A stretch of DNA of 64,000 nucleotides, from positions 288,013 through 352,012 of IMG/VR virus record IMGVR_UViG_3300046787_000200; one strand, 5' to 3'. How positions within the stretch are numbered: the stretch's first letter is position 1; every line of letters starts with the position of its first letter. Made by a program: the position numbers and the translations under genes. Below are positions 17,401 through 27,658 of the stretch, in pieces. The notes below the pieces were generated by a model that worked only from the letters and a program-made list of their open reading frames with translations, was not told the DNA's origin and ran no database searches.

Positions 17401-18270
17401 GAGCACTGAGAATACATGCTTACCGAGTAACACCTCAGACATTATTGTAAACCTTGCGAGCCTACTTTCTTCTGATTTCCACTAAGCCCTGCTTTTACAC
17501 AGTAACCTAGTCTGTTACCAACATCGCCGTTTTAAGTCAGGCATTAGACTTGACATTGTATGCTATTCTACGCTTTCTACTCCGTTGACCTTTAGAGCCA
17601 TTCACTACCGCTAAGTAGTTACGAAACTTCCTGCATAAACTGTTTTCACCTTGCGAGTTACGACAGACTTGATTGTGTTGCCACTCAAGTATTAGATGCT
17701 TTTCACATACAACCGAGACAGACTTTGCATTTTTATAAGATAGTAGGAGTTGAACCTACAGCCTATTCCTTAAAAGGGAATCACTCTACCATTGAGTTAT
17801 ATCAACCTACTGTGATGTGCTGTCTCAGTTGCTTCATAATCTTTTGGACTACAAAATACAACACGCCACGTACCTTTTGTCTCGCGGACTACTCAGTCGT
17901 TTTTTGCGATTAATGTTGCCCCGCCGGTTTCCCGACAACACCATCAACCACTCAAACTGCATACGAACTCTTAGGTGCGACCCCTCGAATCAATACACTA
18001 CCCTTTCTCATACCAGTTAACTGGGCTGGTTTTGTTGTGAGGTCAGCACCACCTGTTACTCTCTGTCTGCCTGTCTTACCCTCACGGGAACATAAACAAA
18101 CATTCTTTCCACAACTCCCAGCGTCACTGTTATCACCACCCGTCTTATAGATGATGACTGCCTCACGGCAGTGAGCAGGCTTGCTTAGATGAACTATTAC
18201 TAGCGCGGGTCTGTAGGAGACGACCGCTTTGGGCATATCACTATGCTTATTCTAATGAGGCTAAGCCCCC
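17399..18270 (-). ncRNA. GOLLD-like giant ornate RNA (~870 nt) with an embedded tRNA-like domain
   Basis: No credible ORF; many GNRA-capped hairpins; 12-bp stem 17710-17721/17820-17831 encloses a tRNA-like unit; lies in a phage tRNA array. Confidence 0.6.
17736..17806 (-). pseudogene. tRNA-Lys(TTT)-like element inside the large ncRNA
   Basis: Intact D, anticodon (ATTCC-CTTTTAA-GGAAT) and T arms; only 4-bp acceptor stem and no CCA. Confidence 0.7.
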
Positions 18271-24245: not shown

Positions 24246-24620
24246 TTATCTTACTGCTTTCGCCCTTGCTTCTACCATCTCGTCAATGAAACATTTATCA
24301 ATGACGTTTGTATAGGTATCTGTATAGCTACTTGCGTGATCCACGACCCTATTGTCTGGTTCGTGGTATGTTCTAATTCTTTCAGAGCCTGCTAAGTTAC
24401 GCTCTTTATCTTTATGAAAATGTGCTTGTATACGACTTAAACAGGTTGTATATGCCGCTCGTTTATTATCTTCTCGGCTACGACTATTCGTACCGTTAGC
24501 TTGAATGCCTGTTGGCTCATGTATGCATCTGCAACAGTTTTGATGTTTGTTACGATGTTGTCCACCTTTGCCGGTGCCACTGAACCATTCATAGCGAAAT
24601 TGATCTTCTGTAATTTTCAT
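24246..24620 (-). CDS. GGQ peptide-chain-release-factor-like peptidyl-tRNA hydrolase (RF-1 domain only)
   Basis: SGTGKGGQHRNK...HEPTGI...RS...NK...ERIRTY..PDNRVVDH; lacks stop-codon recognition domain. Confidence 0.85.
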   Translation of the reverse strand: MKITEDQFRYEWFSGTGKGGQHRNKHQNCCRCIHEPTGIQANGTNSRSREDNKRAAYTTCLSRIQAHFHKDKERNLAGSERIRTYHEPDNRVVDHASSYTDTYTNVIDKCFIDEMVEARAKAVR

Positions 24621-25948: not shown

Positions 25949-26040
25949 TGGAGGAAGATGTGAGATTCGAACTCACGGAACCATTTCTGATCCGTCTGAT
26001 TTCAAGTCAGGTGCATTAAACCGGGCTCTGCCAATCTTCC
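25949..26040 (-). tRNA. tRNA-Ser(TGA)
   Basis: Loop CTTGAAA, long variable arm, CCA. Confidence 0.93.
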
Positions 26041-26041
26041 G

Positions 26042-26227
26042 TTATACTTTTTTGTCTATATGATTGTTATGATGTGTAGGCTCTAACTCTCCTACTCTGT
26101 TATATAGATACTGAACAACTTCAATAACTTTCTTATTAGTTGCAGGATCTACTAACATACTGTAAACCGTGTTGCGATATTGGTGATTAACCATATCGTT
26201 TACTGAGGTTACACTTTGAACTATCAT
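26042..26227 (-). CDS. Hypothetical protein
   Basis: TAAATA just upstream of ATG. Confidence 0.5.
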   Translation of the reverse strand: MIVQSVTSVNDMVNHQYRNTVYSMLVDPATNKKVIEVVQYLYNRVGELEPTHHNNHIDKKV

Positions 26228-26240
26228 ATAGTATTTAACA

Positions 26241-26324
26241 TACCATATAGAAACACACTAGCGATTGGTTGATCTCCAACCTTTACCCACGCTTCTCACC
26301 TGACTAATGTGTTTTTATATGATA
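26241..26324 (-). repeat. Inverted-repeat stem with variable cargo, copy 6
   Basis: TACCATATAGAAACACACTAG...CTAATGTGTTTTTATATGATA on the + strand. Confidence 0.85.
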
Positions 26325-26461
26325 TTGAGGGTGGGTAACGATCCCACTAACTATCGGTGCGATGCCGATTGTGCTACGCTCCATATACAATTAGTTTACT
26401 CTGTTTCGAACCAGACCAACTGTATATCTTTGCACTAACTTTCCATGTCGTTTTCCTCTTT

Positions 26462-26589
26462 ACCATATAAAAACATTTTCAATACTCAACGCAATGCTGG
26501 CACAATGTTCTTTCGCCCCTGCCAGGGAACCGAACAGAGCACCGAAAATTTGTGGCCGATGATGCCCGTCAAAAATGTTTTTATATGGT
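26462..26589 (-). repeat. Inverted-repeat stem with variable cargo, copy 7
   Basis: ACCATATAAAAACATTTT...AAAATGTTTTTATATGGT. Confidence 0.8.
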
Positions 26590-26650
26590 GGCTCCTTACT
26601 TCGATACGAGCGAATCGTGTCGGTCTGGTGGAGTTAACCACGGAGTTAAA

Positions 26651-26734
26651 CTACCATATAGAAACACACTCCCGGAGACGCATTACCTCCCCGTACCGTA
26701 GTATTATGAATTCAAGTGTGTTTTTATATGGTAG
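26651..26734 (-). repeat. Inverted-repeat stem, copy 8, sharing the CCA end of tRNA-Lys
   Basis: CTACCATATAGAAACACACT...AGTGTGTTTTTATATGGTAG. Confidence 0.85.
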
Positions 26735-26805
26735 AAGCACAGGGACTTGAACCCTGAACCTACCGGTTAAAAGCCGGTTGCTCTAGCCAGTTGAGCTATA
26801 CTTCC
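26729..26805 (-). tRNA. tRNA-Lys(TTT)
   Basis: Loop CTTTTAA, CCA. Confidence 0.95.
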
Positions 26806-26812
26806 ATAATTA

Positions 26813-26887
26813 TGGTCCCTCCACTCAGAATTGAACTGAGTCTTGTCGGATTAAGAGTCCGCTATGCTACCGTAACATCTTAGAGGG
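26813..26887 (-). tRNA. tRNA-Lys(CTT)
   Basis: Loop CTCTTAA, CCA. Confidence 0.85.
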
Positions 26888-26952
26888 ATGACTGTATTAA
26901 ATTGTCTTTAATGTGCCATCCCTAGACCATACTTGGAAGTCTAAGAATGACA

Positions 26953-26976
26953 CTATCGTTTACCTGAACGTTTCAT
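26953..26976 (-). CDS. Mini leader peptide MKRSGKR
   Basis: Strong AAGGAG SD, own sigma70 promoter, 14-bp hairpin starting right after TAG. Confidence 0.6.
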   Translation of the reverse strand: MKRSGKR

Positions 26977-26998
26977 GTCGTTCTCCTTTAAAAAATGA

Positions 26999-27027
26999 AG
27001 TATACTAGACAACTGAATTATTGTCAA
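26999..27027 (-). promoter_or_regulatory. Sigma70 promoter TTGACA-17-TATACT
   Basis: Near consensus. Confidence 0.8.
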
Positions 27028-27031
27028 ATAT

Positions 27032-27108
27032 TGGTGCGACCTAAGAGAGTCGAACTCCTGACCCCCAAGTTCGTAGCCTGGTGCTCTATCCATCTGAGCT
27101 AAGGTCGC
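27032..27108 (-). tRNA. tRNA-Arg(ACG)
   Basis: Loop CTACGAA, CCA. Confidence 0.95.
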
Positions 27109-27121
27109 ATATAAATACAGA

Positions 27122-27658
27122 ATGAATCCATTCTGCGTTAATTTAAATTTAGATATACCCCCTTTAAGACCTGATATAGATATCAATAACTTTTCTAAAG
27201 ATTATTGGAATACTATTCCTTTATCATATATCAATACAAATTTAATCTCTTTTCTATTACAAAAAGGATTAGATTTGCCTAAAGCGGCTACTTTCTATTC
27301 TGAAGGTGAATGCATTCATCCTATACATATTGATGGCATAGCAGAATCTGATATGGTTAAAATCAATTGGGTATACGGTGATAACCATATGATGAATTGG
27401 TATTCATCTAATATAATTAAGCCATATAGTCTTGAAAAAAATGATAGAACATATGTCTATTATAAACCACATGAAGTTAATCTAGTGCATTCTCAACAAG
27501 TAGGATGTCCTAGTATAGTTCAAACAGGAATACCGCATAACGTAGTAAATTACTACGGAACACGTAGATGTATATCTATTGCATTGTCACATCGCCAATC
27601 TAAAAAGCTTGTAACAATGGATGAAGCATTGCATTTGTTTAATGAGATTACGGCTTAA
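27122..27658 (+). CDS. 2OG-Fe(II)/cupin-like protein
   Basis: IHIDG...INW...PSIV..G.PHNV.N...R..ISI; TATAAATA at 27110-27117. Confidence 0.65.
   Translation: MNPFCVNLNLDIPPLRPDIDINNFSKDYWNTIPLSYINTNLISFLLQKGLDLPKAATFYSEGECIHPIHIDGIAESDMVKINWVYGDNHMMNWYSSNIIKPYSLEKNDRTYVYYKPHEVNLVHSQQVGCPSIVQTGIPHNVVNYYGTRRCISIALSHRQSKKLVTMDEALHLFNEITA

Follow-up and report, generated by a model that had tools for sequence, protein, structure and literature searches.

At the upstream end of a tRNA array near the end of a 352-kb jumbo phage genome lies a tiny, conserved reading frame that carries Lys codons and precedes a predicted two-state RNA fold, which can tie up the ends of the phage's two lysine tRNAs, so that translation of the frame probably decides whether those tRNAs mature. 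The cassette consists of a Shine-Dalgarno sequence, a frame of 6-10 codons, a hairpin (H1) starting at the G of the stop codon, a small hairpin (H2), tRNA-Lys(CUU) and tRNA-Lys(UUU), and is present in at least 170 IMG/VR contigs of uncultivated phages. No prior description was found: Rfam scans at gathering and E-value thresholds return only tRNAs in 26000-27200, GenBank phages give no match to the 91-nt leader at E <= 1 (a 701-nt query matches only tRNAs), and literature searches for the peptides and for leader peptides controlling tRNA genes found nothing.

The analysed window comprises the last 64 kb (64,000 nucleotides) of an IMG/VR virus record rated complete. Its - strand carries 34 tRNA genes between 12.4 and 27.1 kb, with the cassette at the upstream end of this array and a GOLLD RNA inside it. 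The observation made in the sequence-only reading is confirmed: promoter, Shine-Dalgarno sequence, mini-frame, hairpin, alternative pairing and both tRNA genes are all found where they had been placed (Table 1), and none is a chance feature.

Table 1. Features of the tRNA-Lys leader and of neighbouring elements in the window.
Feature	Position	Strand	Description
Promoter	26999-27027	-	Sigma-70-type; TTGACA, 17 nt, TATACT; 11 of 12 positions match
Shine-Dalgarno sequence	26983-26988	-	AAGGAG, 6 nt before the ATG
Mini-frame	26953-26976	-	MKRSGKR plus TAG (ATG AAA CGT TCA GGT AAA CGA TAG); Lys AAA codons at 26973-26971 (codon 2) and 26961-26959 (two codons before the stop)
Hairpin H1	26913-26953	-	16 bp including G-U pairs; 5' arm 26953-26938, loop 26937-26929, 3' arm 26928-26913; first pair uses the G of TAG
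Masking ("anti-tRNA") strand	26915-26940	-	H1 loop plus 3' arm; complementary to both flanks of tRNA-Lys(CTT) and to the start of tRNA-Lys(TTT)
Part of the 3' arm in the 9-bp pairing	26915-26923	-	AGGGATGGC; pairs with target b, one G-U pair
Hairpin H2	26896-26912	-	ATTAAA/TTTAAT here, CGTAAA/TTTACG in most relatives
Target b	26884-26892	-	GTCATCCCT; 5' flank (-5 to -1) and bases 1-4 of tRNA-Lys(CTT), spanning the RNase P site
tRNA-Lys(CTT)	26813-26887	-	C1-G72 pair, encoded CCA
Target c	26800-26817	-	G72, A73 and CCA of tRNA-Lys(CTT), 7-nt spacer, first 6 bases of tRNA-Lys(TTT)
tRNA-Lys(TTT)	26729-26805	-	Decoder of the AAA codons of the mini-frame
Long-stem elements	26732-26652, 26590-26458, 26324-26240	-	Shared closing helix ACCAUAUAAAAACAC / GUGUUUCUAUAUGGU, 18-20 bp, z = -3.7 to -6, around variable inserts
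Second tiny frame	26459-26323	-	AAGAGG, spacer AAAACGAC, ATG GAA AGT TAG, then a tRNA-like stretch
RF-1 domain protein	24246-24620	-	124 aa, PF00472 (55.5 bits), GGQ motif
GOLLD RNA	17403-17869	-	RF02032, 206 bits; embedded tRNA-like segment at 17739-17803

A degenerate pattern for the Shine-Dalgarno sequence plus the peptide finds 39 viral contigs, and a pattern for the last two codons, the stop and the ends of H1 finds at least 119. Of 113 distinct pattern-derived sequences 111 are real, and all 111 possess a ribosome-binding site and a frame of 6-9 codons. Two anchors were chosen independently of the frame: an exact T-arm of the tRNA recovers the frame in 7 of 7 members, and the 18-nt junction between the two tRNAs in 81 of 81 real members. 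Frame lengths of 6, 7, 8, 9 and 10 codons occur, i.e. length changes only by whole codons. Interior codons vary (Ser-Gly, Ala, Gly, Ser-Ala, Ser-Met, Thr-Gly and others) without creating a stop, and the Shine-Dalgarno sequence varies (AAGGAG, AAGAGG, AAGGAA, TAGGAG) at constant spacing. In the frame-independent sample the codon two positions before the stop is AAA in 80 of 80 members, whereas codon 2 is AAA in 74 and AAG in 5; genome-wide, AAA makes up 67% of the Lys codons of this phage. The last codon is variable (CGT, CGA, CTG, CTC, AGC, CAG and others) and encodes Leu, Ser or Gln in 24 of 80 members, which weakens the idea that Arg codons are co-sensors. The conserved core is therefore Met-Lys(AAA) ... 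Lys(AAA)-X-stop, fused to H1.

The stop is TAG in 79 of 80 members and TAA in one, although TAG ends only 4 of 183 long frames in this phage. Reassignment of TAG is not supported, as reading TAG as sense gains no more open frame in the whole genome than reading TGA as sense. Outside the window (83288-83786 of the phage contig G000:C1, extracted as L305) the phage encodes a permuted, Betaproteobacteria-type tmRNA (RF01850, 106 bits; RF04321, 113 bits; tag ANDSQFALAA), and next to it a tRNA with anticodon CUA, by anticodon an amber suppressor, which could let ribosomes run from the mini-frame into H1. The base of H1, GUGUC/GGCAC, is otherwise invariant, but two informative variants occur at the related loci L036 (second copy) and L303: in one, this base is replaced by GAGCC/GGCUC, with both sides changed; in the other, the stop is TAA followed by an extra G that starts H1.

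Whether homologous leaders also precede unrelated genes had been named in advance as a point that would overturn the interpretation. The leader precedes only tRNA-Lys genes, in 109 of 112 distinct copies, and never another tRNA: about 101 copies are followed by tRNA-Lys(CTT), about 92 by the CTT-TTT pair and 7 directly by tRNA-Lys(TTT). Among 2,678 tRNAs in 143 loci, it is the only recurrent mini-frame led by a ribosome-binding site upstream of a tRNA. The second tiny frame of the window has the same spacer as the Lys leader, and the tRNA-like stretch behind it has a GGATCGTTACC T-loop that neither ARAGORN nor Rfam calls. Several very different tRNA-Lys(CTT) types sit in the same cassette (loci L020, L021, L030 and others), including ones with a GGAUCGUUACC T-loop and unusual D-arms, and ARAGORN misses some of them (L113, L114). 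The upstream neighbour is variable; it is tRNA-Arg(ACG) in only 8 of 117 copies, so that the idea of this tRNA belonging to the unit was rejected. A dedicated promoter is present in about a third of the members, while the others lie inside a polycistronic tRNA transcript. An 85%-identical copy of the window's promoter drives a MoxR-like ATPase gene elsewhere in the genome, and two further copies of the extended consensus (TTGACAATAAATCA...TATACT/TACAAT) lie upstream of a MoxR-like AAA ATPase gene at ~87.9 kb of G000:C1 (extract L002, 1400-1570), which suggests a reused early-promoter cassette.

A scan of 185,579 species genomes gives 86 pattern hits, about what chance predicts. Only two are real, both on tiny MAG contigs (a Polynucleobacter bin and a Bacteroidetes bin), which are probably mis-binned phage. 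A neighbour-protein search for syntenic relatives finds one locus, non-syntenic and without tRNAs.

Two mutually exclusive folds are predicted. State A comprises H1, H2 and the tRNA cloverleaves. State B had been seen only in part, as the 9-bp pairing. The H1 loop is also complementary to the CCA end of tRNA-Lys(CTT), the spacer and the first bases of tRNA-Lys(TTT), so that the loop plus 3' arm forms one continuous antisense strand to both sides of tRNA-Lys(CTT), with 24 of its 26 bases paired in the centroid fold of the window. The minimum-energy fold of the window is state A, the centroid fold state B. H2 forms in both states and brings the 3' arm next to the tRNA 5' flank.

Conservation of both pairings in relatives, another check set beforehand, is observed, with compensatory changes. 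In an alignment of 98 sequences, state A is 87% paired against 30-46% in slid controls, with 285 double-change cells against 98 in shuffles, and state B is 88.5% paired against 31-53%, with 102 double-change cells against 49. Alignment column 97 in the 3' arm (A or U) covaries with its partner in the 5' arm (UA 49, AU 29) as well as with its partner in the tRNA flank (AU 50, UA 38). The loop covaries with the first bases of tRNA-Lys(TTT) (CCCCC/GGGGG, AUCCC/GGGAU, CUUCC/GGAAG). In an alignment-free comparison of each locus's own duplex energy with cross-locus pairs, the means are -23.7 against -18.7 kcal/mol for loop:junction (z = -13.7), -11.0 against -8.3 kcal/mol for 3' arm:5' flank (z = -10.2) and -14.5 against -11.0 kcal/mol for the H1 arms (z = -12.2), with controls at z = -1.0 and -2.4. 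These comparisons do not correct for shared ancestry, but the controls share the same ancestry. G-U pairs outnumber A-C about 4:1, so the pairing is on the tRNA-sense RNA. Natural deletion variants lacking tRNA-Lys(CTT) have a loop and 3' arm complementary to the flank and start of tRNA-Lys(TTT), at -19 to -28.5 kcal/mol; masking the 5' end of the AAA-decoding tRNA therefore looks like the core function. A fourth pairing, between the Shine-Dalgarno/start region and the H1 5' arm, appears in minimum-energy folds but shows no covariation (z = -1.1), and is left undecided.

Dependence on ribosome position was modelled with a ribosome occupying bases -14 to +12 relative to the first base of its P-site codon, an assumption that follows the established position of the mRNA-entry helicase near +11. 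Nascent RNAs of 99 members were folded up to base 5 of tRNA-Lys(CUU). P(H1) and P(tRNA 5' strand held by the 3' arm) are 0.91 and 0.06 with AAA of codon 2 in the A site, 0.72 and 0.16 with the second AAA in the A site, 0.26 and 0.72 with the stop codon in the A site, and 0.54 and 0.47 without a ribosome. The second AAA lies exactly where a waiting ribosome leaves the first pair of H1 at the channel entrance, and one more codon starts to melt H1. At full-length equilibrium, however, the masked state dominates in most members wherever the ribosome is placed (P(H1) about 0.01-0.12), so that H1 must act as a kinetic, co-transcriptional trap; the models omit tRNA tertiary stability. The window's own sequence does show the dependence at full length, with P(acceptor stem of tRNA-Lys(CUU)) of 0.76 with a stalled and 0.002 with a terminating ribosome.

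The best explanation, held with moderate confidence, is a ribosome-position-dependent RNA switch in front of the tRNA-Lys pair. Four regions would compete: the H1 5' arm (1), the H1 loop plus 3' arm (2), the 5' flank and start of tRNA-Lys(CUU) plus its CCA end, the spacer and the start of tRNA-Lys(UUU) (3), and the tRNAs' own 3' acceptor strands (4). If no ribosome has passed, or one waits for Lys-tRNA(UUU) at either AAA codon, 1:2 would hold, 3:4 would form, and the tRNAs would fold and could be cut by RNase P. A ribosome reaching the stop codon would unwind region 1, so that region 2 pairs with region 3 (21-24 bp in two stacked helices) and the ends of both tRNAs are masked. The outcome would be more tRNA-Lys when AAA decoding is failing and less when it is adequate. 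The most economical reading is that state A is productive, as both RNase P sites are exposed there, whereas state B runs a helix through both. What the analysis itself demonstrates is the conserved, translated-looking frame, both folds with covariation, the exclusive linkage to tRNA-Lys and the footprint dependence in thermodynamic models; that the frame is translated, that the masked state blocks maturation, and what the physiological trigger is, are inferences.

The interpretation given in the sequence-only reading, a ribosome at the stop freeing the 3' arm to block tRNA-Lys folding and a stall at the Lys-2 codon permitting maturation, is thus partly supported. Its claim that control is not exerted on transcription agrees with the absence of any terminator-like site between 26800 and 27000. 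The masking strand, however, is much longer than 9 bp, with the 5' end of tRNA-Lys(UUU) as its best-conserved target; the second AAA, not only codon 2, is the invariant sensor candidate; and the Arg part of the Lys/Arg-rich frame is not general. That the masked state is "off", and the link it drew to PrrC and PARIS AriB, remain inference. No experimental or end-mapped RNA data exist. Assembled contigs of four freshwater metatranscriptomes cover the leader and the tRNAs, and several bridge them (e.g. 26717-26957, 26858-26976 and 26773-26944), while the flanks at 27114-27400 have no coverage; these assemblies carry neither ends nor strand, and DNA carry-over is not excluded. Other points weigh against the switch: the H1 loop stays exposed in state A and could still pair with the junction, AAA after ATG also simply favours initiation, and it is not obvious why a lytic phage should limit its own tRNA-Lys.

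Among the alternatives, a processing stalk with reversed logic survives best; it appears unlikely but cannot be excluded. In this view the bipartite helix of the masked state is a double-strand-specific (RNase III-type) cleavage site that separates the leader and the two tRNAs, and translation to the stop promotes maturation by letting it form. The helix has the length of such a stalk (about 20 bp or more of duplex formed by sequences flanking a stable RNA), and the masked state is the thermodynamic ground state of most full-length precursors; cleavage by RNase III was not assayed. The three long-stem elements in the same array add some weight, as their 5' strands begin with a tRNA-type ACCA end, the first with the CCA end of tRNA-Lys(TTT) and the others at two further ACCA ends. 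They may be processing hairpins, and GUGUGUUU motifs also precede several other tRNAs. The loop:junction helix could likewise be a processing site rather than a lock. On the other hand, state A alone offers both RNase P sites, so no stalk is needed for release, the helix runs into acceptor stems that must then refold, and the invariant Lys codons stay unexplained.

It is doubtful that the mini-frame acts through its product, as a small basic peptide, or through peptidyl-tRNA drop-off, as lambda bar minigenes do, with the RNA folds serving only processing or stability. The strong Shine-Dalgarno sequence, the very short length and the conserved basic residues would fit, and the RF-1 domain protein in the array looks like an ArfB-like peptidyl-tRNA hydrolase or ribosome-rescue factor; homologues occur in 9 of 147 related loci, and in one of them (L138) the gene ends 8 nt before the stretch extracted for the leader. 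However, the stop codon is fused to the first base pair of H1 in every member, the peptide is poorly conserved apart from the two Lys (the last residue being R, L, S or Q), and the cassette is linked only to tRNA-Lys. Toxicity through drop-off was not measured. A purely structural RNA, with the frame as a by-product of sequence conserved for pairing or protein binding, is very unlikely: wobble positions of the most common variant are nearly invariant, but length changes are multiples of three across five length classes, interior codons change amino acid without ever creating a stop, the Shine-Dalgarno sequence changes but keeps its spacing, and a broken frame with intact folds was not seen among about 190 distinct copies. 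Inverted repeats at the DNA level, left by insertion or recombination of the tRNA-Lys(CTT) gene, would account for the loop plus 3' arm reading as the reverse complement of the two joined flanks, as if the tRNA had been inserted into one arm of a long hairpin, but are all but ruled out by the strand-specific excess of G-U pairs and by covariation maintained across deeply diverged tRNA types.

Phage tRNAs are now understood as countermeasures to tRNA-cleaving defences, with tRNA-Lys as a documented target (PMC11464382, PMC10264068); PARIS AriB degrades host tRNA-Lys, and the T5 tRNA-Lys rescues infection (PMC11464382). How phages control these tRNAs is essentially unknown. A possible, more speculative reading, untested here, is an on-demand counter-defence: the AAA codons would report, through ribosome stalling, the loss of host tRNA-Lys(UUU) to anticodon nucleases of the PrrC or PARIS AriB kind, and the stall would flip the leader so that the phage's own tRNA-Lys pair is released and matured only then. 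This would be the first case of leader-peptide attenuation with tRNA maturation as output, and the first regulated anti-defence tRNA. The element would extend ribosome-mediated attenuation to the folding and processing of a tRNA precursor, would give a sequence-defined, widely distributed RNA family of about 200 nt with clear, cheap experimental predictions, and offers a compact natural design for coupling translation status to release of a structured RNA.

The logic resembles trp-type attenuation, with a tRNA acceptor stem in place of the terminator. Leader-peptide transcription attenuators (trpL, hisL, pheL and the pheST leader) likewise have a short frame with a ribosome-binding site and codons of the regulated amino acid, and overlapping, mutually exclusive helices (1:2, 2:3, 3:4) selected co-transcriptionally by where the ribosome stands. 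Here, the last helix is a tRNA acceptor stem instead of an intrinsic terminator, no U-run is present (H1 is followed by GUAAAAG/AUUAAAG), the regulated products are the tRNAs themselves rather than biosynthesis or synthetase genes, the frame has only 6-10 codons with two sensor codons, and a stall gives the 1:2 state, because the stop codon rather than the sensor codons abuts region 1. In translational attenuation leaders (ermC, cat), a ribosome on a very short leader frame also remodels a downstream hairpin after transcription, but exposes a downstream ribosome-binding site in response to a drug; in the phage cassette no coding gene follows, the tRNAs begin 66 nt after the stop, and the masked elements are tRNA ends. 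T-box riboswitches share the tie of a cis-RNA to a particular tRNA identity and a UGGU-type sequence pairing with an ACCA 3' end, but the leader lacks a specifier loop, a T-box consensus and any Rfam match to this family, sensing would go through the ribosome and not by direct tRNA binding, and tRNA genes instead of synthetase genes are controlled. In leader-trailer processing stems of rRNA/tRNA operons (RNase III sites), sequences on both sides of a stable RNA also pair into a long enclosing helix, whereas here one continuous upstream strand splints both flanks, invades the acceptor stems and is itself held in a competing hairpin fused to the frame. Phage lambda bar minigenes are also very short frames with strong ribosome-binding sites whose effect depends on particular tRNAs, but they have 2-3 codons, act in trans by sequestering peptidyl-tRNA, and possess neither a fused switch hairpin nor linked tRNA genes.
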